This document shows positions 10,351 through 64,000 of a stretch of DNA of 64,000 nucleotides, piece after piece. A model generated the notes under the pieces. The model did no database searches. It was not told where the DNA came from and was given only the letters and a program-made list of their open reading frames with translations. Both the position numbers and the translations under genes were made by a program. The stretch comes from Macrostomum lignano (Eukaryota). The stretch is from the NCBI GenBank assembly GCA_002269645.1, contig NIVC01000795.1, positions 186,001-250,000 on the forward strand, given 5' to 3'. How positions within the stretch are numbered: position 1 is the first letter of the stretch; every line of letters begins with the position of its first letter.

Positions 10351-10713
10351 ATGGCCGATCCAAACGCCAGTCGCTACCAACAGTACACGCCAGGATTCTA
10401 CTATCCCCAGCAGCAGCAGCCGCCTCATGCCAGGCAGGACTTGGAGCCCTTCTGCCCCACCTCCGTGCCGCTCCCAGACAGGAACGGCTCGCACTTGTCC
10501 ACCCCGGCTCAGGCGGAGGACCCGCCAAGCGGCGGCCAGGGCAGCGCCGGCTTCCAGTACCGGGACAACTCGGCCGGCTCCGAGTTCTCACCCGCACCGT
10601 CAGCTGCTGGATTCAAACCATATAACCGTTCTGCTGCTGGTAACAATAATGCTCAATTAGCTTCCTCTTATGGACAAGGTACTAACGCGTCCAGCTTCCA
10701 GCCGCTTCATCAG

Positions 10714-10751
<38 letters not shown>

Positions 10752-13700
10752 ACAACAGCTACAGCAACAGCAGCAGCAGCAACAACAGCAGCAGCTGCAG
10801 CAACACCACAGCGCCGCCAGCAGCTTGGCAAAGCAGTATGACGACTATTTTGACAGTTGCATTCTGGCCAACCCGCAACAGGCCGACTATTATAGGCAGC
10901 AGAAGCAGGAGTACAGGCAGTACTTTGCCCAGCTCGGAGTCTTCACTGCCTGGGTGAGTGCGATGGGGCTGTAACTGGCGCTGCGCCTCTCAAGCAGGGT
11001 GTTACAGCGGCTCTGACTTCTCGTATTTCAATTCTGTAATCTAAATCTTGATAAAAATATTACTATTTAATTGCTTACTCGTGGACAAGCTCTGCAAGTT
11101 AAGCAAACTTGCCCGCGGTTAGTACGCAGCTGAAATTGGCTGTTTGCGTCAACTGCAGTTCACTCTGCTGTGATTGGGCAGCAGCTATGAGCTGCAGTTC
11201 ACTCTGCTGTGATTGGGCAGCAGCTCTGAGCTGCAGTTCACCCTGCTGTGATTGGGCAGCAGTTCTGAGCTGAGCTGCAGTTCACCCTGCTGTGATTGGG
11301 CAGCAGCTCTGAGCTGCAGTTCACTCTGCTGTGATTGGGCAGCAGCTCTGAGCTGCAGTTCACTCTGCTGTGATTGGGCAGTCGGGTGATGCAGAGTGAA
11401 GTAGCGACCCCCCCCCCCCAAAAGTGCCAGCGCTGCACCTGTTGCCTGGCCAATTTGATTCTAAAAGTTAGCCCTGCCAATTTTCATCAAAGCATCTCAA
11501 AGACTTGCTTGATAGTCAACAGAGAATAATATCTATCACATTCAATGCCAGGGCGACACCTCGTCAGAGGCGGAGCCTGCCGGCCGCTGCACGCCGCTGA
11601 AGTTCAGCTTGCCGCACGCCCGCCTGTCGCTCTCCTGTCCTGGCCTGGCCGTCCAGGTGCCACCGTCCCGGCCGGACGAGGGCGAGCCGGCCAGGGTGCA
11701 CCTGTTTGACAGCGCCTGTCTAGCGGCCGACTGGGACCGGGTGGACTTCTCCGCTTATCCCGGACCGCTGGTGCCCGGCGAGACACTGAAAAGCGAAGTT
11801 CGGGCCTTCCTGAACGCCAAGCTGGTGGAGATGCACGAGCGGCTGGCCGACACCGACTGGGAGGACGCCGCCCTGCTGATCGGCTTCCTGGACTTCCTTG
11901 TTAGGAATAATGGCGTGAGTGTGGCAGCTGGCTGGGTACTCTCTGATTTTTAAGACCTGGATAGACCTGTGTCCCCGAAATCCCCTATAAGGTCCTGTGC
12001 TCTAATCCTAAAACTTAAAATCCCCTTTTTATTAGAGGCTGGGGGCTATGTGCACCCTGGCGTACTTTAAGCGACATTGTCGCACAACACAAGCGCGAGG
12101 ATACGTACGCAGTCATGCGCAGAGGCACACACTCATACGAGTGTACAGCGGCCCAACTTTATTTATCGTTAGGCATGTACACTTCACTGTGCCCTGGGGG
12201 TTCGCCCTCTAGGCCGCTAATTGCACGAGCAGAGCCAAGCCGAGATTTCAATTTAGCTCCGGATTAATGTGACTGCACTTGGAATCGAGCCTGGGCCGCG
12301 GGAACATCAGAACGCCGCGCTTGATTACTAGGCAATGGCACCTTGCTAAAATCCTGAATTTTAGAGTCAGAAGGTCCTGAGTTCGAATATTTTGAGACTA
12401 CAAAAATTCACTAATTCTCACAAGTCTCCAATCTGTGTTCGAATGGGGGGGGCTGTAGGGCTAGCTACTCATAGGGCTAGCTACTCATAGGGCTAGCTAC
12501 TCATAGGGCTAGCTACTCATAGGGCTAGCTACTCATAGGGCTAGCTACTCATAGCGCTAGCTACTCATAGGGCTAGCTACTCATAGGGCTAGCTACTCAT
12601 AGGGCTAGCTACTCAAGTCCTCGACTTGTGAGCGTTCAGACTTCTTTATTTCACTATGGGATTATGGAGTTTCGAGCCCCAGGCCACTGAAATCCCCAAC
12701 TGATAGAGTCAGAGTCAGGGCCAAAATTGTCAGTGGCATCCCGACCCCCTCAACCGCAGATCGCAATGGGCAGCGACCTGTCCGACCTGCTGCTCGAGGG
12801 CCACGAGCTGCGCACCGCCCACTACCGCAGCTACAATGCTGCCTCCGGCCTTGACGCCTCCGCCGCCGACGTTGCCATGGACGCCTTCGCGTCGCTGCCA
12901 CCAAGCGAGCCGGCGAGCGGCCGCGCCAGTCCGAACTCCGCCCAGCAGCAGCAGTCAGAGCTGGCCTCTGCGGCCGCTGCCGCTCTGTCCCAAGCCAGCC
13001 GTCAGCGCGATGACGCCGAGGCTGAGGCCGAGAAGCGGCTAGACAGATTCCGGAAGTTGCTGATGTACGGCCGGAAGCGCGAGGCGCTGGAGTACGCTAG
13101 TAGGCGCGGCCTGTGGGGCCAGGCTCTGTTTCTGGCTCACCAGATGGACGCGGGGCTGCACGCTCGGATGCTGGAGAGATTCGCTGCCAGAGCCATGCAG
13201 CCCGGGGACCCTCTGGTGGCGCTGTACCACTTCATGCAGGTCAGTGGGATCGATTTTGTTGCTTGGGTGGGAGTGGGGCTTAGCGGGGATGGGAGAGTGG
13301 GAGAGTCTTCACGCCAGATCGACAGGCTGGTCGAGGTGGCATCGAGCGTCGGTTTGATCGTCAACACGCTGAAGACCGAGGTGCTGATTGTGCCGGCCGA
13401 CATCCCAGCGGACCTGACGTGCCGCGGCGCAGACGGGCAGACGACCAGGCTCGCACGCTGCCAGCGGTTCACCTACCTCGGCGGTCTGATGCCCCACGTG
13501 GAAGAGGACCTCCGGCGGCGCAGAGGACTTGCCTGGGCGGCCTTTCGTTCGATCCGAGCCGTCCTCCAGTCCGAAGCGCTGCCCGACCGCCAGAGGGCTC
13601 GGCTGTGGCAGGCGGTGGTCGAAACCGTCCTGCTATACAACGCCGAGACGTGGACGCTGACGGCTACGCTGGAGCGGCAGCTGGACTCGGCGCACTCAGG

Positions 13701-16584
13701 GCTGCTCCGTGCGGCCTTTCGAGTTGACGAGAGCGTCGGGACCGAGGCCCTGTACGATCGGGCCAAGCTGCAGCGCCCGTCCATCATTCTGCGCCGGCGG
13801 CGACCTCAACTGGCGGGTCACGTGATCCGGGCTGAGGGCTACTGCCCCCAACCTGTTCAGGACGTCCTGCTGCTCACCTTGCAGGGTCCGTTCAGACGGG
13901 GTCAGGCCCGACCCGTCGATACGTGGACTGCCTGCTGTGCGACGCTGGGGCGCCCACACTGCCAACGGAGCGGACTTTGTTCGCTCCCAGGCTCTGCGGC
14001 GCGCCATCTGACGCGCCCTGTTCTAACTGCGACTGTACATGCGGGGTCGCGTATTTTGTTGTTGTTGTTTGTTGAGAGTGGGGCTTAGCGGGGTGGACTC
14101 AGCAGTGGGATAAAAGAGGATGGGGAAGGGGAATAAAATGATATTATTACCCCGTGACGCGCCCAGGGCCGGGAGCCGGAGCTGGCGGACCTGCGGCAGT
14201 GGCGGCCCTTCCTGGCCATGCTGCTGGCTAACCGGGCTGACCGACCCCGCCTGGCCGCCGCCGCCGTCGCCCGCCTCGGCGACCGCCTGCTGGCCGCCGG
14301 GCGCCTCTACGCCTCCCAGCTGTGCCACCTCCTTGCCGGCGGCTGCGTTGCCCTTGACGACGCTACAGACGTCGACGGGGACAGCTTCGATGCCAAGTCG
14401 CTGGACCCGTTCCGGCCAGGCGGGCCCATCGAGCTGATCGGCTTCGACTCCGCCGCTGCCTCCGTCGCAGCCTCTGCCGGCTCGGCTTCGTCTGTTGCGG
14501 CGGCCGTTCCCAACGAAGCCGTGCAGCTCACCGAGGTCTTCGAGTTCGCTGTCGGCCTCCGCGATAGACGTCGCCGGCTCGACGGCGTCTGCCAGCGCCG
14601 CTTGTCGGCACGCCTGCTGCCCTACAAGTTTCTGTACGCTGTGCGGCTGCTGGACGCCGGCCTGAGCGAGGAGGCCTTCCGCTACTGCCGCAACGTCGGC
14701 CGCTGCCTGGTGCAACTGGACGGCTCCGAAGAGATTAACAAGTCCTCCACCCATTTTGAGTCGCTGATGTTGGAGATTCTGCGACTGGCCGAGCGGCTGC
14801 GCTGCCATCCGGCAGTGTCCGAGCACCTGGACACTGATTGGCTGGCTGAGCTGGCCGAACTGGCTGCTGGGCGGCGCAGGTGGCGACAGCAGCAGCAGAT
14901 TCTGCCGCACCGGCCGTTCCAGCCTCCGCCTACTGGGAATCTGCATCATGATCCCGCATCCTGGCGGCCGCCTCTGCCGCAGCAGCAGCAGCAGCAGCAG
15001 CAGCCTCCTGTCTCGTGGACGCAGCAGCAAAGCTCGGCGACTCCTGCCGCTGCAGCGTCTGCATCCTCGGTTCATGTGGCATTTGACGCGTTCGATGAGC
15101 CGGTATGACCTAAATCCGCTTAAACCCCATATAGTTACTCGCATCAGAGTCACTTGCGTTCTCCCAGAGTCGTTTCAGAGTCGCTGCAGGTAACACAGGC
15201 AAAATAGGAAAGAAGTGACTCTAGATGACTCAATGGGCAAGATGCCAGGTTACCAGTGGCTAAAAAGTCGTCAAAAAGTCGCATAAGAGTCAATTTGAGG
15301 TGTTATATGACTCTGGGGCCGTAAAGTCTGATCTGAAGCGTGCTGGAGTCGCTGTAGAATTACGACTCTGCAACTCACATGGTGCGCTCGTGACTCAACA
15401 GTTGCCTCGTGCCTCTCCCTGGCATTACGGTTGTTTGAGACGTTTTCAACGAGCCAACTCCAAGGCACAGAGAGTGTACATGTCTGACGATTAGAAAGTC
15501 CCCTGTACACCCTGTGTGAGCGTGTGTACGAGTGCGCTCCTGTGTACAGTATTGGCGCGCTCGGGAGTCTGTGGAATGAGCAGAATTGCTTCAGCGCTCC
15601 GGTTGTGGGACCGATGTCGCCGAAGGCTTTGCGCCATGGTGGCCGCAGTCTTCCTGCATTATTATCTTATGTACACAATCCACCTCGCTGGTTTCCCATC
15701 TCAGGCCTCGCAGATCCCCGACTATCAGCGCCGGCGCGCCCTGTCCAGCAGCGCCTCGTCGCATGGCGGCGAATCGTCGGCTGTCCAGGGCGCCGGCAGC
15801 GGCGCTCATTCGCGCCAGACATCGCCGGCACCGTCGTCGCCGCCTTCGTCGCCGGTGGCGCGACCACCGTATGCGGTGAGTCGCGTGTACTGTATTGCAC
15901 TATATTCTTAGTCCTGTGGCTTTAGCACCCTCCCCTTCCCACCAAGCCTTGGCTGAATTGCCGCGCTCGAATCCCAGATAATTTGGCGCCACTCAAAATG
16001 TTTTCATCTCCGCAGCCTCCGCCTGCCCCACCGCCTCAGCCGCCGCCGCTGCTGAAGTCGCAGCCTCCGCCTCAGCACCCGGTTCCGCCTGTGAGCCGTG
16101 GAGCTGCGAGGAGTCGGGATTCCAGCCTGAGTTCAGGCATGAGCCACCCGCAGCAGCAACAGCAGCGGCAGCAGCAGCAGCCCTATTCCCAGTACCCAAG
16201 CCAGTCTGACTCGCACAACCAATACCAGCTCGGCCAACAGCGCTATCCCGTGCCGCAGTCCCAGCCTGAGGAGGTAGCAGCTCACGAGGAGCATCCGCAG
16301 TCGCTGGAGTTCGAACAGCAGCACCAATATCACCAGCAGCCGCCTCAGATGTATCAGCAATCGCAAGGGGCTTCTTATCAACCGCAGGCGCAGCCGCCTC
16401 CACCACAGCCAGAGGCTCAGCCGCCATCGGAGCACTATGAGCAGCTTCAGCAGGCTGAGCAGACTCAGCAGCCGCAGCAGCTCCATCTGCAATACCAACA
16501 GCAGGCACAGCGGCAGACCCCACCATACCCACAGCCTCAGCCACCGCAGCAGAAGCAGCAGCAATACCCACAGCCCCAGCCACC

Positions 16585-16617
<33 letters not shown>

Positions 16618-17818
16618 GCAGCAATACCCACAGCCCCAGCCACCGCAGCAGCAGCAGAAGCAGCAGCAATACCCACAGACTCAGCCACCGCAGCAGCAGC
16701 AACACCCACAGACTCGGCCACCGCAGCAGCAGCAGTACCCACAGACTCAGCCACCGCAGCAGCAGCAACACCCACAGACTCGGCCACCGCACCAGCAGCA
16801 GCACCCACAGACTCGGCCACCGCAGCAGCAGCAATACCCACAGACTCGGCCACCGCAGCAGCAGCAGTACCCACAGACTCAGCCACCGCAGCAGCAGCAG
16901 TACCCACAGACTGAGCCACCGCAGCAGCAGCAGCAACAATACCCACACACTCAGCCACCGCAGCAGCAGCAGCAGTACCCACAGACTGAGCCACCGCAGC
17001 AGCAGCAATACCCACAGGCTGAGCCATCACAGCAGCAGCAATACCCACAGTCTCAGCCATCACAGCAGCAGCAATACCCACAGCCCCAGCCACCGCAGCA
17101 GCAGCAGTACCCACAGACTGAGCCACCGCAACAGCAACAATACCCACAGACTCAGCCGCCGCAGCAGCAGCAGTACCCACAGACTGAGCCACCGCAGCAG
17201 CAGCAATACGCACAGTCTCAGCCGCCGCAGCAGCAGCAGTACCCACAGACTGAGCCACCGCAGCAGCAGCAATACCCACAGTCTCAGCCGCCGCAGCAGC
17301 AGGCTCCGCAGTCGACGACGCTGCAATACCAGCAGCAGCAGCGATTCCAGCCGCCTCCTCGTCCGTATCAAGTGGGCCAGCCAGTGACACAGCCGCCTCC
17401 CCAGCAGAGTCAGGCGCAGTCTCAGATGCAGTCGTCGCAGCAGAATCAAGCTGCTCAGCAGCAGCAATTGCAGCCGCCTCAACAACAGCAGCCGCCGCCG
17501 CCGCAGCAGCAGGCCAGCCAAGGCATGTTCTCTCGCATGTTCGGTAGGATGTTTGGCGGCGGCGGCGGCAGCGGTGCTGACAGCCAGCCGGAGCCAAGTC
17601 AGCAGGAGCCGCAGCAGCAGCCTCCGCCACCGATGTACATGCAGGCTTCGCAGCCGCAGCAGCAGCCTCCGCCACCGATGTACATGCAGACTTCGCAGCC
17701 GCAGAGGCAGCAACAGACATCAACTGCGGCCCCCGGCGGTCCGCCGCCGCCTCCGCAGCCGCTGCATTACTACGCCGCTGGTAAAAGTATTTTCTCCCCA
17801 GCGCCGGTGCCTCAGTGA
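10351..17818 (+). CDS. SEC16: Protein transport protein Sec16 (ER exit-site scaffold), six-exon model
   Basis: Exons 10351-10953, 11552-11914, 12760-13239, 14167-15102, 15705-15875 and 16016-17818, all joined in phase 0 at GT..AG. The central conserved domain reads TPLKFSLPHARL...YPGPLVPGETLKSEV...LDFLVRNNG|IAMGSDLSDLLL...LLMYGRKREALEYASRRGLWGQALFLA...GDPLVALYHFM|...QWRPFLAMLLAN...LTEVFEFA...YKFLYAVRLLDAGLSEEAFRYC. The 3' end is less certain because a possible donor lies at 17781. Confidence 0.9.
11141..11382. repeat. 39-bp minisatellite (gctgcagttcactctgctgtgattgggcagcagctctga), about 6 copies, SEC16 intron 1
   Basis: Read directly. Confidence 0.92.
12029..12341 (-). mobile_element. tRNA-derived SINE, family A (copy 1), SEC16 intron 2
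   Basis: On the minus strand: A-box-like TTGCCTAGTAAT, B-box GGCTCGATTCC and an A-rich tail. The body (gcggcccaactttatttatcgttaggcatgtacacttcactg) is shared with 55373-55738. Confidence 0.8.
12457..12615. repeat. 16-bp tandem repeat (gggctagctactcata), about 10 copies
   Basis: Read directly. Confidence 0.95.
13289..14075 (+). mobile_element. 5'-truncated RTE-like non-LTR retrotransposon (RT C-terminal part) in SEC16 intron 3
   Basis: Encodes VGLIVNTLKTEVL...FTYLGG...DLRRRRGLAWAAF...LLYNAETWTL. Ends in a (TTG)n tail. An 18-bp TSD gagtggggcttagcgggg lies at 13271-13288 and 14076-14093. There is a frameshift near the 3' end relative to the copy at 41721-42524. Confidence 0.88.
15135..15480 (+). 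repeat. Dispersed GAGTC/GACTC-rich repeat, copy 1 (SEC16 intron 4)
   Basis: agagtcgctgcaggtaacacaggcaaaataggaaagaagtgactctagatgactcaa matches the reverse complement of about 20085-20145. Confidence 0.65.
16520..17300 (+). repeat. Coding minisatellite of about 33 bp (QQQQYPQTQPP-type units) in the SEC16 last exon
   Basis: More than 20 units of cagcagcagtacccacagactcagccaccg and variants, all in frame. Confidence 0.9.
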
Positions 17819-20430: not shown

Positions 20431-35243
<14,813 letters not shown>

Positions 35244-41554: not shown

Positions 41555-42700
41555 GCCGAATCTCATACCACCGAATCCCACCGAATCTCTCCGAATCTCT
41601 CCGAATCTCATTTCACCGAATCTCGCCGTATCTCACCAAATCTCATCTCACCGAATCTCACCGAATCTCACTAAATCACTCCGAATCTTACCGATTCTCA
41701 TTTCATCGACTCTCATTACACCAACACAACAACAACAAAATACGCTGTCATGATGGTAAAAGTCAGCGTCACAGGGCGCGCTTCATGGCTTGGGCGCGAA
41801 CAAAGGCCGCGCCACCGGCAGTGTCCGGGGCGCCGGCGTCAGCCAGCAGACAGTCGACATAACGCCGAGTTCGCGCTTGACCTCGCCGGTAGGGTGCCTG
41901 CAGCGTGAGCAGCAGCACCTCCTGCACCGGCTGTGGGCAGTACGACTCGGCGCGGATGAGATGGCCTGCGAGCTGGAGTCGCCGACGGCGCAGTAGATCA
42001 CTTGGACGTGGCAGGCTAGCGCGGCGATAGAGTACCGCGTTGGTGACTCGCTCGACGCCGATGTTGAAGGCGGCGCGCAGCAGACCAGCGTGCGCCGCAT
42101 CGACTTGCTGTTCGAGTGAGTCCGTCAGCGTCCAGGTCTCGGCGTTGTACAGCAGGACGGTCTCGATTACCGCCTGGAACAGCGCCGCCCTCTGGCGGTC
42201 CGGTAGGGCCTCGGACTGCAGGACTGCCCTCACAGAACGAAAGGCAGCCCAGGCAAGCCCGCGGCGGCGTCGCAGGTCCTCGCGAGCGTCTGGAACCAGA
42301 CCGCCGAGGTAGACGAACTGCTGACATCGCGGGAGTTCGGTCGCCTGCCCGTCAGCGCCTCGGCAAAATATTGCAGCCTCGATGTCGTCCGGCACGCAGA
42401 GCACAACGGTCTTCTGCGTGTTGACCACCAGGCCGACACTCGCCGCAACGGCAACCAGCCTGTCCAGCTGCCGTTGGGCGCCCTCGACGGTCGAGGACAG
42501 CAGGGCGAGGTCGTCGGCGTAGCCAATCTCTCCGAATCTCATCTCACCGAATCTCATCTCACCGAATCTCACTGAATCTCACTGAATCTCTCCGAATCTC
42601 TCCAAATCTCATCTCACCGAATCTCATCTCACCGAATCCCACCGAATCTCTCCGAATCTCACTTCACCGAACCTAATTATTTAATCGAATCTCATCTCGC
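41555..42700. repeat. Short-unit satellite (accgaatctc variants) split by a LINE fragment
   Basis: Arrays at about 41555-41715 and 42525-42700. Confidence 0.88.
41721..42524 (-). mobile_element. 5'-truncated RTE-like non-LTR retrotransposon (RT C-terminal part)
   Basis: GYADDLALL...VGLVVNTQKT...FVYLGG...LLYNAETWTL...KRAL*, then gcgtatt(ttg)n tail. Same family as 13289-14075. Confidence 0.88.
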
Positions 42701-42844
42701 AGGCTCTCATCCTACTGAATCTTGTCTCACACCTCATATCCCATATCGCTGTAGCTCGTATACCTAAAAAACTACTTTCTTTAACCCTCGTTGTCAGCGA
42801 ACTTCAAAATTCATGAATGTACTCCATACATTTTGCCGCCAGCG

Positions 42845-43507
42845 ATGGCTGCCGCTCGCTCCGCCGCCCCACCGCTGGGTCCGGGTGCCCCAGCCGGAAG
42901 CAGCCACGCCATCTTCGACGGATTCGACCAGTCTGATTGGCCCGAGAAACCGATGCCACCGGCGGAGGTGCCCGATCCGACACCCAGAGACGACAACCGC
43001 GTCCAGACGAAAGTGCGGCCGGCTATGCAGTACCGATTCACGGACAAGCTGCTATTCATGGACGAGTTGTTGATTCACGCCAGCGATAAACAATTCAAAG
43101 AAGCGTTGAAATTTGCTAACAGCAAAGACGAAAGCACTCTGAAGCTGCACGAAGATGAGCACTCGAGAACTGCGGCTCACTATGCTGCAATGAGCTCTGA
43201 AGGAAAAGAACTACTCAAGACGTTGATCGAGAAGGCGGGTAAATCTTGCCTTGACCATCGAGACTCGAACTCAGCTACTCCGCTTCACTACGCTGCTCAG
43301 AACTATCGTATTGAGCAGTTTCACCAGCTGCATCCCGACGCCGAGCAGGAGCTGCGGAGCTCAAAGATGAGGGATCAAGCTGGAGACACGCTGGCCCACT
43401 ACGCTGCCAGAAACACTACAGATGAGTCAGTCCTGAGATCGGCGCTTCACGAGAATCTCCCTGCTATGCTATGGAAGAACAATAGAGGTCATACATGTGG
43501 CCGTTGA
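42845..43507 (+). CDS. N-terminal part of an ankyrin-repeat TRP channel, upstream of the frameshift
   Basis: Acceptor ttttgccgccAG precedes the ATG at 42845. Ankyrin repeats RTAAHYAA, ATPLHYAA and DTLAHYAA; the frame breaks inside the next repeat (NRGHT...HVAVEH). Confidence 0.75.
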   Translation: MAAARSAAPPLGPGAPAGSSHAIFDGFDQSDWPEKPMPPAEVPDPTPRDDNRVQTKVRPAMQYRFTDKLLFMDELLIHASDKQFKEALKFANSKDESTLKLHEDEHSRTAAHYAAMSSEGKELLKTLIEKAGKSCLDHRDSNSATPLHYAAQNYRIEQFHQLHPDAEQELRSSKMRDQAGDTLAHYAARNTTDESVLRSALHENLPAMLWKNNRGHTCGR

Positions 43508-46466
43508 GCATTGCGGTGATGAGCTGGTGAACCATCTGCTCGAACAGGCCAGAGAGCACCTTGGGAATAGGATAAATGAAGAAAAGATTGCAGTTGACAA
43601 CGACGGAGACACGCTGGCTCACTGTGCCGCTAGGAACGAAAATCCAGGCTGCCAAAATGATGAAGTGTTTGAAGAAGTGAAGACATTTTTCGGCAACGAG
43701 TGCCTCAGCTGGAAGGATTCGGCGGGACAGTCAGTGCTGAAGACAGTCATTCAGCGTTGCGCCGACGAAACGGCTAAGCAGATGGTGGAGGCGTTTGCTG
43801 ACAAAAAATTGCAGCAACTAAGAGAATATGCTGATGAAGAGAAAAACAGCTACCTGCACATTGCGGCAATGAGCGAAAAATGCAAAACATTCGCCAGAAT
43901 ATTAGAGATCCTGAAGCAAGCCAGCACTGAAGACGAATGCATTGAGCTAATTAGCGAAAAAAGAAATGACGACGGCCAAACAGTATTGCATATCGTGGCT
44001 GGCGGTGACAAGAAACTCTTGAAAGCAATTCGGGAAAAGTTGACAACCCTCAAATTAAATAACTTCATTGCCGATCGCGATGGCAGAGGCAGAAATATGC
44101 TCTTCTACGCTTGCATGGCGTGGAATTTTTCGCTCCTGAAGATCCTGCAGAGCCAATCAGACGCTTTCAAAGAAGTTGATGCCGACGAGAATAGCCTCTT
44201 GCACGCCATGTTCTTAAATCACAGAGTCGATGAACTTGTTTCTTCGGAGGAATTTTTCCAAAACGTGGCCTTTCTTGCCGAGAAAATGCCAAATGGCGTG
44301 AATCACGAGAACAATCTAAAAAAGAACTTTCTTCACTGCTCGCAATTAAAGGAGAAAGTTCTCATTAAAATTTTAAGTGCCGCGGTCGATAGTCCGATTT
44401 TGAAAAAAGTTTTTCTTAACAAGGATGGCGTTCACGTAGTTCACGAGTTCGCGAGCCGGTACAACCTGGAGAATCTGATCGAACCTCTCGCCTCGATTGC
44501 GAATGCCGAGAAAGCCGAACTACGCAGCAAGGTAGTGGAACGGGGTCCCAACAAAGGTGCCAATTGCCTGCACTTCGCTTGTCAAGCAGGCCACCAGGCC
44601 AACATTGCCTATTTAACGAAAAACGGCCTTAAAATAACTGACATGGACCACGATGGGCTGACTTGCATCGACTACGCTCGCGATGCTGACCAGCTGAAAA
44701 AGTTAGTGGAGGCCCAGGGCTTCCAACCGATCGAGGCTTGCCGTCTTTTTGACCCACTGCACCGTGCAGTGAAGCTGCCTGACCGGCCGGCCGCGATGCA
44801 GCACATTGCTCGAATTGTCGACCAGGTGGTGAAAGAAAAGTTAGAAAGAGGCCCATCAAGATTTAAAAGGGAGAACCAGTCGTCACAGGGGGTCTCCGTG
44901 TTGCAAGCAGCCTGGGATGATGACTCACCCCAAGCGTTTCGCAGCGCACTAAAACTAAGCTTACTAGGGGCAAAGACAGAGAAAGGATTCATTCGACAGT
45001 GGATCAAAGACCACCCAGATGATAGTTCTATAGATAAAAATCCAATCGAGATGCAACTAATTGACCTTGCACTTAAACACAACAAACTCGATCTTCTGCC
45101 TGACCTCATCATCACGAGGCAGTTCGAACTGATTCCCAGCTGCATTAGACTAATCATTCAGCTGAAGAGAAAGATCAAAAAGCACGATGTTTATCACGAC
45201 CAGCTAAAGAGTCTCGCAAGCAAAGTCATCAGCATAGCCGTAAACACGCTTGGCCAGCTGTATGCAAATTCAGATGACAAAGATAGAGAGCTTTTATTCA
45301 ATTACATCAGAGGCGAAATCGGAGGTCCAAGGTACAGCATTGACGAAAATGAAAACAGTAGAGCGACCAGATGCTGCAGCGGTGAGTCTCAACGGTGCAC
45401 AGTTTTGGACCTCGTTGAAATTGCTGAATGCGAAGACCTGTTTGCTACAGACTGCATCTACAAACTGGCTAAGGAGGAGTGGAAGAAGGCAAAGAACTGC
45501 GGAAGTCCAACTACCCACTTCGGATTTAGCCTAGCTACCTACATCGTATTCATGTTGTACTTTGTTTGGTTTGTTACCGACTTTAAGACGACATTCAATT
45601 CGTTTGTGAGCGACGCAATTCTGACTGCGTTTGCGCTGCTGTTTCTTGTGCTCGAAGTATTTGACTTTACCTTGCTGCCACCAAAAGCAATCTGTTGTGG
45701 TGGTAGGTCGAGTAAGTGCTCGATGTACTGGAGAAATGTGTACAATGTGTTTGACTTCATAGCTCTATTGCTTTTGTGGCTTGGTATCGTCTGGAAGTGG
45801 GCCATTTTCGGAGAGCCTGGTGACGTCACTGCCTACGCATGCCAGTGCATTCTAAGCACGTCATTCCTTTTCTGCGGATTTCGTTCTGTTGCCTTCCTAA
45901 GCTCATGGCAAAAGACGGGGCACGTTATCGTCATGCTGAAGAAGCTAATGATAGGAGACTTGGTACCGTTCCTTGCGATCAGTGCGATCATTTTTCTATC
46001 GTTTGGAGTGTTTTTCTTCAATTTGCTGTTCCCATCAACCACCGCGCAGTCAAGCGAGACGCAGGCCGAGTTCTACTGGTGGCGAGTCATGCTGCAGGTT
46101 TTAACGATGCCGTTCGATCTGCTGTTTACCAACTTTGAACGCATTCAGTTTGACACTCCTAGAAGCGACTTGAGTCAGGAAGTCGGATCAGTGGCTAACG
46201 CTATCGGTCTGTCTTGGTTCCGCAATCTCACGCTATTTGTTTTCCTCCTGCTGGTGAACATTGTGATGGTTAACCTGCTGATCGCTCTGTTCAACCTTCG
46301 GGTGAGCACGCTTCACAGTAAGGCCATCGGAATCTGGAGACAGGGATATTTTGAGCTGCTTCGCGAGTACCAGCAGCGAGCTGCACTGTACTGCTGTTGC
46401 ATCAACCGAACGTGTTCGCGAGTTGGTCCCGACGGAAAACCAGAGTCGGTGAGTTCGGGCTTGTAA
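43497..46466 (+). CDS. Divergent group-1 TRP cation channel (about 11-12 further ankyrin repeats, pre-S1 region, S1-S6, TRP-box-like helix); frameshifted from the upstream part, so a possible pseudogene or assembly error
   Basis: 989-aa open frame. Six hydrophobic helices, S4-S5 linker FLSSWQKTGHVIVMLKKLMIGDL, and S6/TRP helix NIVMVNLLIALFNLRV...IWRQGYFELLREY. A strong donor GTGAGT at 46449 suggests the true exon ends at 46448. Confidence 0.85.
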   Translation: MAVEHCGDELVNHLLEQAREHLGNRINEEKIAVDNDGDTLAHCAARNENPGCQNDEVFEEVKTFFGNECLSWKDSAGQSVLKTVIQRCADETAKQMVEAFADKKLQQLREYADEEKNSYLHIAAMSEKCKTFARILEILKQASTEDECIELISEKRNDDGQTVLHIVAGGDKKLLKAIREKLTTLKLNNFIADRDGRGRNMLFYACMAWNFSLLKILQSQSDAFKEVDADENSLLHAMFLNHRVDELVSSEEFFQNVAFLAEKMPNGVNHENNLKKNFLHCSQLKEKVLIKILSAAVDSPILKKVFLNKDGVHVVHEFASRYNLENLIEPLASIANAEKAELRSKVVERGPNKGANCLHFACQAGHQANIAYLTKNGLKITDMDHDGLTCIDYARDADQLKKLVEAQGFQPIEACRLFDPLHRAVKLPDRPAAMQHIARIVDQVVKEKLERGPSRFKRENQSSQGVSVLQAAWDDDSPQAFRSALKLSLLGAKTEKGFIRQWIKDHPDDSSIDKNPIEMQLIDLALKHNKLDLLPDLIITRQFELIPSCIRLIIQLKRKIKKHDVYHDQLKSLASKVISIAVNTLGQLYANSDDKDRELLFNYIRGEIGGPRYSIDENENSRATRCCSGESQRCTVLDLVEIAECEDLFATDCIYKLAKEEWKKAKNCGSPTTHFGFSLATYIVFMLYFVWFVTDFKTTFNSFVSDAILTAFALLFLVLEVFDFTLLPPKAICCGGRSSKCSMYWRNVYNVFDFIALLLLWLGIVWKWAIFGEPGDVTAYACQCILSTSFLFCGFRSVAFLSSWQKTGHVIVMLKKLMIGDLVPFLAISAIIFLSFGVFFFNLLFPSTTAQSSETQAEFYWWRVMLQVLTMPFDLLFTNFERIQFDTPRSDLSQEVGSVANAIGLSWFRNLTLFVFLLLVNIVMVNLLIALFNLRVSTLHSKAIGIWRQGYFELLREYQQRAALYCCCINRTCSRVGPDGKPESVSSGL

Positions 46467-52487: not shown

Positions 52488-53322
52488 GATTCGTCCGAAA
52501 CTGTCGCGAGAAGTGGAGAAAAATCGAAGTGACTTCGAGCAGCTGAAAGCGCACTCCGAGAATAGCCTGGCAAGAGTGCATGCTGAGATTAGCGAGGATC
52601 TGACCTACTTAAAACGCAGGCTAAATGAAGTCGAACACGCTCAGAATCTGCCCGAACGCGAACAAAACAAAGCGAGGCAGGTTGAAGAACATTCGAAACC
52701 CGCTGACCGATCCCAGAGCCTGCAGAAGGCTGCAGCTGGATCTGCAGAACGGCAGCTGGGCCAGCATAGGACTGCAGCTGGATCTGCAGAACGACAACCG
52801 AGCCAGCAGAGGGCTGCAACTGGATCTGCAGAACGGCAACCGAGCCAGCAGAGGGCTGCAGCTGGATCTGCAGAACGACAACCGAGCCAGCAGAGGGCTG
52901 CAGCTGGATCTGCAGAACGACAACCGAGCCAGCAGAGGGCCGCAGCTGGATCTGCAGAACGACAACCGAGCCAGCAGAGGGCTGCAGCTGGATCTGCAGA
53001 ACGACAACCGAGCCAGCAGAGGGCTGCAGCTGGATCTGCAGAACGACAACCGAGCCAGCAGAGGGCTGCAGCTGGATCTGCAGAACGACAACCGAGCCAG
53101 CAGAGGGCCGCAGCTGGATCTGCAGAACGACAACCGAGCCAGCAGAGGGCTGCAGCTGGATCTGCAGAACGACAACCGAGCCAGCAGAGGGCTGCAACTG
53201 GATCTGCAGAACGGCAACCGAGCCAGCAGAGGGCAGGAGAGGCGAGGCGCGATCGTCGACTACCGAGGAATTCGCAGGGGACTGTTGGTAGTCTAGCCAA
53301 GCGTAAACAAATTTCTGCCTGA
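52488..53322 (+). CDS. Paralogous coiled-coil exon with expanded 14-aa repeat, copy 2 (coding status uncertain)
   Basis: Open frame homologous to 47479-47824, with about 12 copies of AAAGSAERQPSQQR. Confidence 0.45.
52728..53232. repeat. 42-bp minisatellite (gctgcagctggatctgcagaacgacaaccgagccagcagagg), about 12 copies
   Basis: Read directly; a single unit exists in the paralog at about 47719-47760. Confidence 0.95.
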
Positions 53323-53652: not shown

Positions 53653-55012
53653 CTCCGGCTGTCCGGAAAGTCGTGAGAATGTATTTAAAAAATCAGTCAG
53701 AACTATCAAAAAACACGATAACAGCACTAGTTGGTAATGTAATCTCCCCTTGCGTTGATTACAGCTTGGCAATGGTCAACGAGTCGCTGAACCTCTCTTT
53801 TCAAGCAATCTTCGTCAAGGCCTCTTGCCCATTGCAACGCAGCTTCTCGAACTTCATTATGGTCGCTGAACACTCGCCTGGAGAAATCATTCTTCATCCA
53901 ACTGAACAAAAAACGGTCGCACAAATTGAAGTCTGGGCTGTAAGGACTCTGAAACACCAGCTGAACTCCACGGGACTCCATGTACTGCTGCACAGAACGA
54001 GCCACGTGAGGTCGCGCATTGTCCCACTGCCAAAGAACACCCGACAGGTGAATTGGCCTTGACCTCAGAGTACGCCATAGGTCTCCGGTGTGCCGAATGA
54101 ACTTAACTATGCCATTTGCATCAACAGTTTGCTTTGGGGCTGTGGATTCAATGGAGAAGCGCTTGTTTGGAGTAAAAGCAACCAGAAGCATTGTCTTTGC
54201 ATTGCCGACCGAGTGCCTGACAACCTGGGGCCGATGATCCCCTTGGCCAAGCCAGCACCTATTGTTTTGCTTTGTGCCAGTGTTGTTCAGGTACACCCAT
54301 GTCTCATCTTCCACCACGTACTTGTCGCAAAAGTTTTCCACCCCCTTGTTGTAAAAAAGCCTGCGAATTTGCTTGGCACAATTGATGCGAGCAGTCTTGT
54401 TCTCCTCGGATAGAGCATGCGGAACCCAGACAGCAGAAACGTTTCGAAGGTGCAAATCCTCAGTAAAAATTTCGTGCACTGTTGTTTTTCAAACTTCCAA
54501 AAAGTCAGCGAGGTCTCGGACACAACTTTTGGATCCTCTTCAACGAGAGCTCGGCAGGTTTCGATCAGTTCCGCTATCCTTGTTGACCGTGGCCGGCCAG
54601 TCCGAGGAGCTGAGACCGGGGGAAATGCTTCGTCACGGAACTTCGAATACCATCTGTAAACCGTTGACCGACCTGGTGCAGCATCTCCATAAACTTTGAG
54701 CAGCTCGTCATGGCAGCTGAGAGCGCAGATTCCAAGACGGTATCTAGCATAGGCATAACCCTGGACAGCTGGAAGTCTTCCATTTTGAAGAACTTGCTGT
54801 CAAAATTTTCAAACTTGATCACCGCGTTGCATTTGCTATTGAGCACTTTATACTGAGCTCGCCCCTGCCCCCCAATTTTGCTACTAGAATAACAAGAATT
54901 TTCACCATAGACATATATAAGTCTATTATTGAAAATTTCTGTGTGCCACGTCAACAGCTTGCTGCTTTCTTGCTTAATTGACACATTCTCACGACTTTCC
55001 GGACAGGCGAAG
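53653..55012 (-). mobile_element. mariner (DD34D) transposon, full length (1360 bp), with inactivated transposase
   Basis: 30-bp TIRs ctccggctgtccggaaagtcgtgagaatgt and acattctcacgactttccggacaggcgaag (2 mismatches), with TA TSD on both sides. Motifs WVPHAL, EDETW, WDNARPH and YSPDFNLCD, with 34 residues between the second and third Asp. The N-terminal HTH (YGDAAPGRSTVYRWYSKF) is separated by a TGA and at least two frameshifts. Confidence 0.95.
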
Positions 55013-57935: not shown

Positions 57936-60196
57936 CTAAAGACGTTACATACATAATACATAAATTGCTATACAACAAAGTCGATTGCGGCGGGCATACT
58001 TCTAAGATTTGTTTATTTTCATCTAGAAGCTACTGAGCCCCTCAGTCAGGCTGCTCACCCTTCTGGACAAATTCATTTCATTTCTAAACGAGGCCAAACT
58101 CATAGACTAGCAAAGAAATTTCAAGTTGCATTATTTTAGATTCAACCATCGAAAAGCATTTCCTTCCTATTATGAAAAAAAGACACAGAGAAGAATGCAA
58201 GAGAGACAAATCAGGCTCGCCCATTGCCCCCCCCCCCCTCCCAGCTATACTGCAACTTGACATTGTTGTGTTTGAGCTGCTTTTGAAATATTATTATTTG
58301 CAGCATTGTGCGGTCGGGGCTGGGCACAGTGGCCAAGCTTTGAGTCCCTCTTGGAGGAGGGGGCAGTTTGGAAGCGAGGGACGCCCCCCCCAGCCCCACA
58401 CTTACTTTTCTGCACGCAAGTTCGAGTACAACAGCAGCTGACCTGTCTCCCCTCCCCAGCTCGAACCTAACTGCTCACTGCATCACCCTCATCTGACAGA
58501 GGGGTGTGGGGGAGTTGCACATTCTTGTTAGAACAATGGAGAGCTCTGGCAGAAACCTGACAGCGCCATAAAAGGTAATAAAAAAGGCCACCTGTAGGCC
58601 GCGAGGCATTTGCCAGAAGCATCAAAAGTTTTCAATTCAAAGCAGAGTGCACCGACTTTCGCCGAGATCTTCACCGTTGAATTGTGCCAGAAGTCGAGCG
58701 CAGCACTCGGTTGTTGCTATGGCAACCAACGGTGACACAGTGTGGCTGCCTACCGATTACCACGAGCGACTAAAGGTGAGCGAGCAATGGAACTTAGGAC
58801 AGGGAGGGAGGCGGTTGACAGGGCTGACTGTGCTGACTTCCCAAGTACCTCGCGCGTACATCTTGCAACTTGCCCTGTCTCGGTAGTTGGTGAGGAAGTT
58901 CTACGAGTTGTTAACAAGTGTCGGATTTCTCCAACAAGGCAAGCAAACTTCAGGCGTGAGAATTCTCAGCGCGATGGTGTCGCACCTCTCTCTCCCTCTC
59001 TCTCTTCGGATTTCTGTTGCGCGCGTGTTGAGTGAGGTTTCTAAGCAAAAAGCATAGGCAAGAGTCTTAGTGAATTACTCAGACTGGTGTAGCACTTGGC
59101 TTAAGCAACGCAAAAGCATCAGCCTATTGGCGGTTTGCAAATTGGTCAGGTGAGGAGAATAAGTATAAAAAATTGCCGCACAGAATTAATTTTACATTAT
59201 TCATTTATGCCCCTGAATTCTGTCGCTGAAATTCACTGCAAAGGTGCAGTTTGTACTCATGTGGGCGCAAACAATGAATTTATTATTGTAGCAAAAGAGT
59301 CCATCGCTTTGCCCCTACAAAATCGTGTGGGGGATGCCCCCACTGGGATGCCCCGCCGACACGTGTCTGCGGATCGCTTGTTAGTAAGTGCAAGCAGTGC
59401 CCACCCGCGGCTTCTTTTAGAGAGTAGAAAGAGTATCTAGCTGAGCTCATGAAGGCGCTTCAGCCACGAACTCGGCAGAAGCAAACAACGCGACGCGGGA
59501 ACAACTTATGAAGACGGTTTGAGTTTAGCGAAGGGCCCGCGAAAGACAATGAATGAACGAATGGATCGAGAGACAGGGGGGCCGATGGAATGCCAGCCCA
59601 GGTGGGGGTGCTTTGGGCGAATGGAGAGGCAAGCCAGAAAAGCCAGAAAAGCAATGCTCTCAGCACAATTTACCAGTGGGGTGGGGTGGGGGGGAGAGAG
59701 ACATTGTTTACGCGATTTCGCAGTCGAATAGCAAGAAAACTTGAAGCAATGGAATGAGAGAGGGGTGGGCAGAAGGAGAGCCGGGGATTGGAGAGTTTTG
59801 CACTATCAGAGCAGAGCCAAAGGTGGCCAGCAAATATCAGAGCCGGTGAGAGGTCGAACGAGCACCTGAAGCCGCCGGAGCTCTATAGGAGTGGCAGAGC
59901 CAGCGAAACTGCAGACGCAGAGAGCACTCGTCCACCCCTTCGCCCAAAGTCGCATAATAAATACTTTAATGCCAAGCTGCCAAGCACTTGCTTCCATAAT
60001 AAGCTGGAGTAAGAACTCAGATAAGCATTTTTATAATAGCTAGGATTTTGCTTGTGTATATGAGACTGTCAATGCGCTTTGCAGATAGCAAATAGTACAG
60101 CTGATTAAATAGGTTATCTTTGATGCTCCAAGCCTGTAAGCGGCTTTCCTTGAGATAATACTTAGTGAAGCCAATAGCAGAGTCGAGCAGTCAGCC

Positions 60197-63100
60197 ATGC
60201 TGAAGCTGGCCGCCAAGAGATCAGCTGACTCAGCCTCTCTGTCGGATGATGCGGCCGCTTTGCCCAGTGTCAAGTACTGCCTGTGGAAAAAGGTAACTTT
60301 GCTGGGAAGCCACCAAATGCTGCAGTTTTCTTGGAAACTGGACAGATTGAATAAGACTTTGCCTCTAAATATTGCCAAATATTTATCCCGAGTCTTCGAG
60401 TGCTCAGTCTAAAGCGAGTGCTCAGTCTAAAGCGAGTGCTCAGTCTAAAGCGAGTGCTCAGTCTAAAGCGAGTGCTCAGTCTAAACTGAGTGCTCAGTCT
60501 AAAGCGAGTGCTCAGTCTAAACTGAGTGCTCAGTCTAAAGCGAGTGCTCAGTCTAAAGCGAGTGCTCAGTCTAAACTGAGTGCTCAGTCTAAAGCGAGTG
60601 CTCAGTCTAAAGCGAGTGCTCAGTCTAAACTGAGTGCTCAGTCTAAAGCGAGTGCTCAGTCTAAAGCGAGTGCTCAGTCTAACCTGAGTGCTCAGTTTAA
60701 AGCGAGTATATTTATTTGAACTCGGTGCTAAGTGCTCATTCTAAACAAGCGCCCAGTTTGGTCTCGGTGTTGCCAACAGTTCTAGAAAAAATGGCTGACT
60801 TTCAATTCCGACCTTCACAGCATGCCCGAAGCCAGGCATTCAGGAATTCAAGTAAAAGCTTTGGGCGAGCAGTCGAGCAAAGAAAAGAAGTTGTTTTCTC
60901 CGAAATGTGGCGCCTTGGCCAACTTCAAATGCGCAGTTTGAAAGCACTTAACATGGCATCACCCTGCAGGATTTATGCATTTCTTTTCTGGGGCGTCGGC
61001 CAAACGGTACAAATTTGGACTAAAATGGCACACAAGTTGGTTAATACACGGCCTGCTAAGTCACTTCTACGTGACCTAAATGTAGTTCTGCATACCCGAG
61101 CACTAAGAGATGGACCGCCCCCCCCGACTCACCTGATGCTCACCTGAAAGACAGCGCGGTGGTCTCGCAGTGCCATTACAGAGCAATGCGGTATTGAAGG
61201 CAAACACACTTGCAGGTCTGTGTGACGGCGTCCCCATTATTTCCATAAATTTTGCTGGGAGAGAAAACAGAGCAAAAAAAAGAAGAGAACAAAAAAACCC
61301 ACCGCCGCCGGCCTCGCCAATAAAGAAAAACTTTCTTTAGGCGCAATTCGCCTTAGAGATATAAATTGGTCGCTTACCCGATGAGGTAGGGCTGGCTGTT
61401 CTGAGCAGACAGAGCTGAGATTTCCTCCCGAAGTCAAATTTGAAATGAGACAGAGATGGTCCTGGTAAGGCTGGCTTATTGAGTCGGTTTCGTTGCTGCT
61501 TTTTTGCTGCAACTAATTTGGGCAATCATCGCATCCACACACAGGGAACTCAGTTCACTTACGACATACCGGATGGTCTTATCGAGGGCGACTGCGTGGA
61601 GATTAAAGGAATTCTGTCGGGTCACAGGTGAGTCTCGGCCGAAGGTATTCCATATTCACGGACACGCAGACTGTTGATCAGCTTAGCTAAACCATGCGAT
61701 GCCCCTCCCAGACTGCTGATCAGCTTAGCTAAACCATGCGATGCCCCTCCCAGACTGCTGATCAGCTTAGCTAAACCATGCGATGCCCCTCCCAGACTGT
61801 TGATCAGCATAGCTAAACCATGCGATGCCCCTCCCAGAATGCTGATCAGCATAGCTAAACCATGCAATGCCCCTCCCAGACTGCTGATCAGCTTAGCTAA
61901 ACTATGCGATGCCCCTCCCAGACTGCTGATCAGCTTAGCTTAACTATGCGATGCCCCTCCCAGACTGCTGATCAGCTTAGCTTAACCATGCGATGCTCGG
62001 CCCCTCCCCACAGAGTGGTGCTCGAGCTCGCCAGCAGGCAGCAGACCGGCGGCCGGGCGCAGATCCCTCTGCGGATCAGCATCAACCGGGGCGGACACTT
62101 TGAGCTCCTGTGTCAGCCGGAGCCCGGCGCCAGAGACCGATTCAAAACCGGCAAGAGTAAAGGCGAATTCCGCACCGGCTCCTCGTTCACCGTGCAAATT
62201 CTGGTGGAGAATGAGCGCTATGAGGTGCGTCTATAATGATACAAATGCTTATAGAATGGTAAAATTTGTATTTCACAATTTTTACATAAAATAAAGTAAC
62301 TTAGTACAAGTAGTACTTAAGTACAAGTAGTCATATTCCAAGCTAGTCTAGTCTAACAACAGTACAGTCTAGTCTAGTCTAGTCTAGTCTAACAATAGTC
62401 AAATCTAGTCTAGTCTAACAACAGTACAATCTAGTCTAGTCTAACAACAGTACAATCTAGTCTATTCTAGCAATAGTACAATCTAGTCTAGTCTAACAAC
62501 AGTACAATCTAGTTTATTCTAGCAATAGTCAAATCTAGTCTAGTCTAACAACAGTACAATCTAGTCTAGTCTAACAACAGTACAATCTAGTCTATTCTAG
62601 CAATAGTACAATCTAGTCTAGTCTAACAACAGTACAATCTAGTCTATTCTAGCAATAGTACAATCTAGTCTAGTCTAACAACAGTACAATCTAGTCTAGT
62701 CTAGCAATAGTCAAATCTAGTCTAGTCTAACAACAGTACAATCTAGTCTAGTCTAACAACAGTACAATCTAGTCTAGTCTAGCAATAGTCAAATCTAGTC
62801 TAGTCTAACAACAGTACAATCTAGTCTATTCTAGCAATAGTACAATCTAGTCTAGTCTAACAACAGTACAATCTAGTCTAGTCTAACAACAGTACAATCT
62901 AGTCTAGTCTAGCAATAGTCAAATCTAGTCTAGTCTGACAACAGTACAATCTAGTCTAGTCTAACAACAGTACAATCTAGTCTAGTCTAACAACAATACA
63001 ATCTAGTCTAGTCTAACAAAAGTACAATCTAGTCTACTCTAACAACAGTACAATCTAGTCTAGTCTAGCAATAGTACAATAGATAAAAGACGCGTGTGCA

Positions 63101-64000
63101 AGAAAATTGCTCGGGGAACACTAAATTCGACAGGTCCGGCTAAACGATGAAGTCCTGTCAACAATCGAGCACGGGAGCCTGCACAGCATGATTCACATGC
63201 TAATGTTAGACGGAGAAGCGGAATTCACTTCCGTCGAGTTTCTCGATATCGAAGACATCGACGCATCATCGGAGTCGGAGCAGGAAGAGATCGGAATTAA
63301 TCAGGTGCTCACTGAGCCTTTAGACACCCACGAAGAAGTCGAAGCAGGTAAGTGCGATAACAAAATTTCTGCATGAATGCACTCGACTGACAATGCTTCA
63401 TGAATAGCGATTCTCTAAGTTATATGCACTCCGATTAGACGCATGAAGTACATAAAAGCACAAACAGCATGCAATCGTGCACACCTAATGACAAAAAATT
63501 TCCAGATTTCATCCTACCCAAAAAAGTGAAGGAACAAGAATCAGGGGTGCAATTCCCTTGGTCAAAAAAGAACGAGCCGAAACCTAACAAAACACTAAAT
63601 ATAAATGTGAAGAAGCCTGACCTCGACATTGATGTAAAGGCGCCAGATGTAGACGTGGACATTGACACTGACGTAAAGCTCAAGAAGCCGGACGTAGACA
63701 TCGACGTGAAGGGTCCGAAAGTAAAGGGACCTCACTTCAAGATGCCGAGCTTCGGACTCAAAGGACCCAAAGTCAAGGGACCAGACGTCGACATTGACGT
63801 CGATGCTCCAGACGTAGACGTCGACGTGGACGTGAAGAAGCCTGACCTCGACATTGATATAAAGGCGCCAGATGTAGACGTGGACATTGACACTGACGTA
63901 AAGCTCAAGAAGCCGGACGTAGACATCGACGTGAAGGGTCCAAAAGTAAAAGGACCTCACTTCAAGATGCCGAGCTTCGGACTCAAAGGACCCAAAGTCA
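60197..64000 (+). CDS. Galectin-fold domain fused to AHNAK/periaxin-like repeats (3'-incomplete)
   Basis: Exons 60197-60292, 61545-61627, 62014-62224, 63134-63347 and 63506-64000+, with consistent phases 0, 2, 0, 1 at GT..AG. The spliced product reads ...GTQFTYDIPDGLIEGDCVEIKGILSGHR|VVLELAS...QIPLRISINRG...GEFRTGSSFTVQILVENERYE|VRLNDEVLSTIEHGSLHSMIHMLMLDGEAEFTSVEF..., then 75-aa repeats KKPDLDIDVKAPDVDVDIDTDVKLKKPDVDIDVKGPKVKGPHFKMPSFGLKGPKVKGPDVDIDVDAPDVDVDVDV. Confidence 0.75.
60412..60705. repeat. 18-bp minisatellite (gctcagtctaaagcgagt), about 16 copies, intronic
   Basis: Read directly. Confidence 0.95.
61665..61995. repeat. 42-bp minisatellite (atcagcttagctaaaccatgcgatgcccctcccagactgctg), about 8 copies, intronic
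   Basis: Read directly. Confidence 0.95.
62340..63082. repeat. 26-bp TCTAG-rich satellite (atctagtctagtctaacaacagtaca), about 28 copies, intronic
   Basis: Period measured from 62403 to 62429. Confidence 0.95.

Follow-up and report, generated by a model that had tools for sequence, protein, structure and literature searches.

In the current analysis, a 64,000-nucleotide (nt) stretch of the genome of the flatworm Macrostomum lignano (assembly GCA_002269645.1, contig NIVC01000795.1, positions 186,001 to 250,000 of the forward strand; hereafter the window) is found to end in the 5' part of a gene whose product joins an N-terminal galectin-fold domain, here termed the head, to tandem repeats of 75 amino acids (aa) that resemble those of the vertebrate AHNAK proteins. 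The final exon of the gene is cut at base 64000. This architecture of galectin head and AHNAK-like repeats is real, is listed in the databases under automatic names only and is undescribed. By analogy, the product is rather probably an extended scaffold in the cytoplasm, positioned at the cortex or membrane of cells that are most likely epidermal; its galectin fold would be a non-lectin head and its repeats an array of amphipathic strands.

The initial annotation had placed the galectin fold and the AHNAK-like repeats in one coding unit, possibly of an invertebrate, built of five exons in matching phase. The exons 60197-60292, 61545-61627, 62014-62224, 63134-63347 and 63506-64000 do join into an uninterrupted frame of 366 codons, which is still open at base 64000, so that the frame runs off the window as described. 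A model of six exons (58599-58775, 60155-60292, 61545-61627, 62014-62224, 63134-63347 and 63506 to 64000 and beyond), in which all introns are of the GT...AG type, translates to a product that is identical to a database protein (P0001, UniRef, 380 aa), with 100% identity across all 380 residues. The single coding unit, its frame and its GT-AG junctions therefore stand, and the proposed splices 62224/63134 and 63347/63506 are exact. The exon count and the proposed start at 60197 have been revised. The first 59 residues of P0001 map to 58599-58775 (tblastn against the window), which adds a sixth, upstream exon; exon 1 begins at 60155, and the Met at 60197 is internal, since the P0001-type product has its first ATG about 1.5 kb upstream at 58719 (MATNGD...). 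P0001 itself ends within the first repeat, at window base 63822, and has no stop codon; it is therefore a truncated gene model. The features of the gene within the window are as follows.

Exon 0, 58599-58775, plus strand: 5' leader as in P0001, with the first ATG at 58719 (MATNGDTVWLPTDYHERLK) and the donor CTAAAG/gtgagc; located by tblastn of P0001 and included in the exact match of the six-exon translation.
Exon 1, 60155-60292, plus strand: 138 nt, phase 0; IILSEANSRVEQSA, followed by the Met at 60197, a Ser/Ala/Asp-rich segment and CLWKK.
Splice sites of exon 1, plus strand: acceptor ttccttgag/ATAATA and donor AAAAAG/gtaact; the exon matches P0001.
Exon 2, 61545-61627, plus strand: 83 nt; start of the galectin fold (GTQFTYDIPDGLIEGDCVEIKGILSGH), where the Pfam domain begins.
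Exon 3, 62014-62224, plus strand: 211 nt; core of the galectin fold with the degenerate sugar-site strands (IPLRISINRGG...CQPEPGARDRFKTGK).
Exon 4, 63134-63347, plus strand: 214 nt; closing strands of the galectin fold, which reach to about 63241 (LDGEAEFTSVEF), and the acidic linker at 63242-63347.
Exon 5, 63506-64000, plus strand: 495 nt visible, open at the window end; end of the linker, basic lead-in (DFILPKKVKEQESGVQFPWSKKNEPKPNK) and tandem repeats; the intron in front of this exon is in phase 1.
Repeat copy 1, 63607-63831, plus strand: 225 nt or 75 aa, KKPDLDIDVKAPDVDVDIDTDVKLKKPDVDIDVKGPKVKGPHFKMPSFGLKGPKVKGPDVDIDVDAPDVDVDVDV, made of approximately three sub-repeats of 20-24 aa (repeat families D1 and D2 with pattern analysis).
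Repeat copy 2, 63832-64000, plus strand: truncated by the end of the window; one Val-to-Ile and two synonymous changes separate it from copy 1 (98% identity).

An AG just before 58598 may serve as a splice or trans-splice acceptor, as judged from the bases alone. The three introns in the N-terminal and galectin coding part each contain a long minisatellite (60397-60707, an 18-mer in 17 copies; 61667-61996, a 42-mer in 8 copies; 62339-63080, a 26-mer in 28 copies), and these arrays are well preserved with a match of 85-95%; the whole window is rich in such arrays.

A second database protein of M. lignano named 'Galectin' (P0003, UniRef100_A0A1I8I3S1) is the sibling of P0001 in its 90% cluster. 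It is about 97% identical, differing in 10 of 380 residues, and has the same head, junctions, domain order and repeat as the window gene. As a second copy, it gives independent support to the joined model. A distant paralogue with 41% identity is represented by P0002 (A0A1I8IFC8) and a longer form, P0004 (A0A1I8GA91), and P0002 can be aligned across the junction of exons 4 and 5 (EADFILPKKVKEQ versus EPELIVPKKFRKQ).

The linker between head and repeats comprises 37 aa with an isoelectric point (pI) of 4.05 and is acidic as had been proposed. The predicted 225-nt periodicity is also borne out, as positions 63607-63775 and 63832-64000 are 98% identical, with 3 differing bases of which 2 are synonymous. 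Only 1.75 repeat units are visible in the window. Tandem Repeats Finder (TRF) gave no 225-nt repeat call, fewer than two copies being present, and the repeat was detected by a separate repeat finder. The 75-aa unit contains 19 Asp, 13 Lys, 14 Val and 9 Pro and carries a net charge of -6. Its hydrophobic residues are isolated between polar residues in 23 of 24 cases (19 of 20 in the catfish AHNAK unit), and stretches of 4-8 residues with strict alternation of hydrophobic (V/I/L/F) and charged (D/K) residues are ended by Pro or Gly. Such a pattern, as read from the sequence, is that of short amphipathic β-strands. The repeats also contain a GPKVKGPHFKMPSFGLKGPKVKGPDVD block of the kind seen in fish AHNAK-like sequences. 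The term 'giant' scaffold, used in the initial annotation, is not supported by the 1.75 units in the window and a database model that stops inside the first of them.

The head matches the Gal-bind_lectin family of Pfam (PF00337) with 38 bits over profile positions 1-132 of 132, the curated cut-off being 22.1 bits. This end-to-end match appears only after splicing, because the domain is divided over three exons. A profile of the head family, built from a 14-sequence alignment (A1) of M. lignano, fluke and tapeworm sequences, recognises the galectins of the PDB with an E-value of 9e-16. A model made by AlphaFold2 from the single sequence (first 215 residues) was unusable, with a predicted local distance difference test score (pLDDT) of 30, and the run with the family alignment was used instead. 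It yielded an all-β model of the head with a pLDDT of 83.8 and a predicted template modelling score (pTM) of 0.81. In a Foldseek search of the PDB the top 50 matches to this model are all galectins (template modelling (TM) score 0.68-0.76, E-value down to 4e-10). The assignment of the head as a galectin β-sandwich, a two-sheet jelly-roll, is thus well supported by the predicted model, and the profile and structure checks proposed for the N-terminal part have both come out in its favour. The window protein is, by its sequence and predicted fold, a member of the galectin superfamily.

The residues that contact the sugar in galectins are changed at all seven positions of the head. In galectin-3 numbering the substitutions are H158 to P, N160 to R, R162 to S, N174 to L/Q, W181 to D, E184 to K and R186 to G. 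Two independent alignments agree on this, by HMMER against galectin-3 and galectin-4 and by MAFFT against canonical carbohydrate-recognition domains (CRDs), and no Trp is present in the sugar-site segment of the head. Since all seven canonical contact residues are replaced, the head has a galectin fold but is probably not a lectin. The degenerate sugar site is shared across the flatworm family of the head.

This family has been explored with an exhaustive HMMER search of 1.84 billion representative proteins, which gave 25 matches. In the best of them the domain lies at the very N-terminus (residues about 2-200) of proteins of 780-1350 aa. The species include the flukes Clonorchis, Calicophoron, Echinostoma, Paragonimus, Schistosoma turkestanicum and Heterobilharzia and the tapeworms Taenia crassiceps and Mesocestoides, and the fluke and tapeworm relatives are named only 'Galectin domain-containing protein' or 'hypothetical'. 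The same degenerate N-terminal galectin domain is seen in Clonorchis sinensis H2KRN4, Calicophoron daubneyi A0AAV2TBQ7, Taenia crassiceps A0ABR4QI38, Mesocestoides corti A0A0R3UJU4 and M. lignano A0A1I8GA91. Alignment A1 has the invariant residues I18, P19, L22, D26, E29, G32, G36, P56, G65, F96, G135, F144 and D146, and the motifs IP-GL--D-IE--G and MDGDAEFTSVEF-D are conserved between the flatworm proteins and the head of the window protein. The latter has the N-terminal domain with the invariant residues of the family, followed by a long low-complexity tail. In a further word-indexed homology search with alignment A1, two short exon fragments of tapeworms were the only matches. N-terminal galectin domains of this kind, with degenerate sugar sites and at the start of long, mostly disordered proteins, form a family that extends across the flatworms, and the head is a member of it.

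The relatives, all uncharacterised, resemble the window protein in the long low-complexity region after the head and differ from it in the nature of this region. A Pfam scan of the long fluke and tapeworm relatives revealed no domain besides galectin, and PDxDxD/KGPK repeats are absent from their tails. Some members end in more galectin-profile domains, as exemplified by P0004 (1456 aa), in which the degenerate head is followed by about 650 disordered aa and four more galectin-profile stretches at the C-terminus. A similar C-terminal end could lie beyond base 64000 in the window gene.

Besides the M. lignano gene, only one protein with head and AHNAK-like repeats was found in the exhaustive search, namely P0024 (UniParc UPI0006014472, 805 aa). 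It has the same head with 30% identity, followed by six copies of a 69-aa repeat rich in D, V, K and P and of the same design. It differs from the window protein in a longer Ser/Asn/Lys-rich spacer of about 270 aa before the repeats and in having WKLPKFGG for FKMPSFGL. The search for the same pair of domains, which had been proposed earlier, has yielded P0024. The fluke and tapeworm heads, widespread as they are, carry other tails. The architecture is present in at least two sequences beyond the window locus and is rare among catalogued proteins.

Searched against 5.8 billion database sequences, the repeats have 'AHNAK isoform X7, partial [Silurus asotus]' as their best named match (41% identity, 99% of the query covered, E-value 3.8e-20). 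Smith-Waterman scores of the repeats lie 11-16 standard deviations above those of shuffled sequences (z = 11-16), and MPSFGLKGPKVKGPDVDI has the same residue as MPSFGMKGPKLEGPDVDV of P0009, an AHNAK-like fragment of fish type, at 14 of 18 positions. Repeats of similar vocabulary have been noted in two further sequences. An unrelated eukaryotic contig of ENA ERZ26867466 encodes on the plus strand at 4136-12446 a run of open reading frames (ORFs) with C2-domain matches, then one with a FYVE match, and the ORFs interspersed among them consist of KKPDLDIDIDLKK-type repeats; an example is P0012, which has the FYVE ORF as a neighbour. A Tara Oceans scaffold of a marine plankton eukaryote contains at 340-2770, on the plus strand, a long ORF with AHNAK-style repeats (FKFPSFGFGGKGKVK, VKGPKIDG, DVDVKAPKADLD).

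Three explanations that differ from the proposed scaffold in the gene model, in the function of the head or in the origin of the repeats have been considered. The fusion could be an artefact in which a small galectin-like gene ending at 63347 is misjoined to a separate repeat gene starting from an in-frame ATG at about 63469, which lies 37 nt 5' of the proposed acceptor and after a stop codon (frame 2). This is extremely improbable, as the joined product exists in both P0001 and P0003 with identical junctions despite the 10 differing residues, the alignment of P0002 runs through the exon 4/5 junction, P0024 carries head and repeats within a single protein, and exon 4 ends without a stop codon, with a good donor (gtaagt) and a good acceptor (tttccag). 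The ATG near 63469 was rejected as a separate start on these grounds. A lectin or adhesive protein that is secreted or exposed at the surface, for instance one that serves in flatworm mucus or adhesion, and in which the galectin domain would bind glycans and the charged repeats would form a sticky or spacer region, would be in keeping with the export of galectins that is possible without a signal peptide, with the adhesive proteins of flatworms, which are large and repetitive, and with the four extra galectin-profile stretches of the paralogue P0004. It is very unlikely in view of the loss of all seven sugar contacts, for which lectin function was rejected as the principal interpretation. Moreover, the roughly 65 N-terminal residues of the six-exon product lack a hydrophobic run of the signal-peptide type, and the Pfam scan of the visible product revealed no Cys-rich or extracellular domains.

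The origin of the repeats is less clear-cut, and it is quite conceivable, at somewhat less than an even chance, that they are not of AHNAK descent and represent an independently evolved low-complexity module of PDxDxD strands and KGPK/FKMP turns that recurs in eukaryotes. 'AHNAK-like' would then be merely descriptive, and the gene a lineage-specific tail variant of the galectin-headed family of flatworms. The repeat unit scores 149 (z = 9.3) against the linker P0012, which on its sequence context is read as part of an unrelated multi-C2/FYVE protein, and 150 against catfish AHNAK, and reversed-sequence controls keep about half of the scores (80 of 150 and 118 of 192). Therefore, much of the similarity reflects a common design and is not proof of ancestry. 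The ENA contig shows, as far as its ORFs can be read, that the PDxDxD vocabulary arises outside AHNAK-like proteins, and the Tara Oceans scaffold displays a similar vocabulary. The unit of 75 aa is unlike the 128 or 165 aa of AHNAK and AHNAK2, its net charge of -6 is unlike that of the neutral catfish unit, and the tails of the fluke and tapeworm relatives are quite different. On the other side stand the block of 18 residues, MPSFG[LM]KGPK[VL][KE]GPDVD[IV], which is common to the AHNAK-like fish-type fragments at 14 of 18 positions and includes M, S and F, residues that composition alone does not favour; the overall E-value of 3.8e-20 among 5.8 billion sequences; and a layout of small exons leading to a repeat exon as in AHNAK genes (PMC10682155). 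True homology with the repeats of vertebrate AHNAK and periaxin is a tentative and rather doubtful proposition. It would make the repeats an old bilaterian module carried on differing globular heads, which would be PDZ in the vertebrate proteins and, in free-living flatworms, a galectin fold blind to sugar. In periaxin and AHNAK2, self-association or anchoring is the task of a domain-swapped PDZ dimer, and the galectin fold would take it over in the flatworm protein. 'AHNAK-like' is a fair description of the repeat design as judged from sequence, whether this design goes back to common descent or to convergence.

In the extended cytoplasmic scaffold proposed above, the galectin-fold head would bind other proteins or associate with itself. 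Short amphipathic β-strands of the repeats would make up an elongated array, in line with the 'polyionic rod' idea proposed for AHNAK, and the array would space or tether partners. The repeats are net acidic, with -6 per unit, and differ in this from the neutral catfish unit. Cations such as Ca2+ may mediate their contact with membranes or partners; speculatively, membrane contact would probably require cations or basic partners. The epidermis is suggested because the planarian 'AHNAK-related' gene Dj-ahnak (EST Gi32899321) is epidermal. It is expressed in the dorsal and ventral epidermis, has been used as an epithelial and epidermal marker since 2007, and its expression rises after irradiation (PMC1896013, PMC4014983).

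The equal score of P0012, the high scores of the reversed controls and the length and charge of the unit weigh against this scaffold as they do against AHNAK descent, and several further points are to be added. The function of the gene product is proposed by analogy; the visible product has no PDZ domain; and the number of repeat units within the window is small. Since the fluke and tapeworm relatives carry other tails, the head does not require the AHNAK-like repeat. The 5' end of the transcript is uncertain, and the gene may have yet another exon farther upstream, which could even encode a signal peptide.

No paper has been found on AHNAK or galectin fusions in Macrostomum or describing this architecture, and none mentioning the accession numbers or locus tags of the head family. 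The earlier statement that the architecture is not among described proteins holds in this sense; the proteins are already catalogued, though only under the automatically assigned name 'Galectin'. The AHNAK type is usually regarded as a vertebrate one with a PDZ head, and the mechanism of its repeats is still unclear. A flatworm protein with the AHNAK repeat design on a different, well-folded head would offer a natural head-swap experiment. M. lignano is tractable, with RNA interference, in situ hybridisation and transgenesis established, and the role of the repeats in the organisation of the epithelial cortex is testable in this animal. The family also provides a clear case of a galectin fold without sugar site that has been put to new use at the head of long intracellular proteins throughout the flatworms, and, itself uncharacterised, it includes proteins of medically important flukes and tapeworms. 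If the repeats are convergent, the interest drops to that of a lineage-specific low-complexity tail.

The remainder of the window encodes further genes and mobile elements, listed here in the order of their positions.

12727-15108, plus strand: homologue of Sec16, with TPR_Sec16 matches in two ORFs.
13300-14000: the first Sec16 ORF runs into a C-terminal fragment of reverse transcriptase (RT), closely similar to a copy at 41769-42572 on the minus strand; the sequence suggests a non-LTR (long terminal repeat) retroelement fragment inserted in or beside the Sec16 gene.
15983-17818, plus strand: ORF of 611 aa just 3' of the Sec16 segments, nearly all Gln/Pro-rich and built on a coding repeat of 33 nt (QQQYPQTQPP); the Sec16 gene may have its disordered C-terminal part here.
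21980-22458: pure (TAG)n microsatellite of about 160 copies.
25290-31683, minus strand: LTR retroelement of the Ty3/Gypsy type in which gag (zinc knuckle) and pol (RT, RNase H, integrase) are long open frames; its sequence has the look of a recently active element.
42791-46466, plus strand: adjoining long ORFs (238 and 989 aa) with many ankyrin repeats and a C-terminal multi-pass hydrophobic region; with these features it resembles a gene for a TRP-type channel, introns being few or absent.
52716-53234: 42-nt tandem repeat in 12 copies, open in several frames, within a 280-aa ORF.
53727-54479, minus strand: ORF of a DDE_3 (Tc1/mariner-like) transposase.

Among known systems, the repeats bear comparison with the AHNAK family, which is defined by a PDZ head, units of about 128 aa in AHNAK and about 165 aa in AHNAK2, a mass above 600 kDa, a single giant exon and a domain of some 1000 aa at the C-terminus, and whose genes have small 5' exons followed by the repeat exon (PMC10682155). 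The window protein is like AHNAK, AHNAK2 and periaxin in its tandem repeats of alternating hydrophobic and charged stretches with Pro/Gly breaks, in the motifs PDVD-x-D, KGPK-x-KG and FKMPSF, and in the layout of its gene, with small 5' exons for the globular head and then the repeat exon. The repeat vocabulary and the alternating amphipathic pattern of the family are thus both found. AHNAK/desmoyokin occurs in vertebrate epithelia, and the planarian 'AHNAK-related' gene is likewise epidermal. The head, however, is a galectin fold and not PDZ, the Pfam scan of the whole visible product having revealed Gal-bind_lectin only. The length of the unit differs from that in AHNAK and AHNAK2, which is a soft distinction since fish AHNAK-like fragments also show periods of about 64 aa, and the unit is net acidic and not neutral. 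The idea that a galectin fold takes the place of PDZ, put forward in the initial annotation, is right as to the missing PDZ domain; the replacement itself is an analogy, given that an unrelated multi-C2 control scores as high as catfish AHNAK. The window protein is of AHNAK type in its repeat design, but is not classed as a member of the AHNAK family.

The chimera-type galectin-3 also joins a galectin fold to Pro/Gly-containing tandem repeats, and this repeat region mediates its self-association. The order is opposite to that of the window protein, as galectin-3 has its repeats at the N-terminus and the CRD at the C-terminus; its repeats are short and collagen-like, and it keeps the sugar site that the window protein has lost. 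The arrangement of N-terminal repeats and a C-terminal sugar-binding CRD that characterises chimera-type galectins is accordingly not seen here. The head itself also resembles LGALSL, GRIFIN and galectin-10, -13 and -16, in which a galectin β-sandwich carries substitutions in the H-N-R / N / W-E-R set, and galectin-10, -13 and -16 are among its close matches in fold and sequence. These are small single-domain proteins, whereas in the window protein the fold, with 7 of 7 positions changed, heads a long repeat protein.

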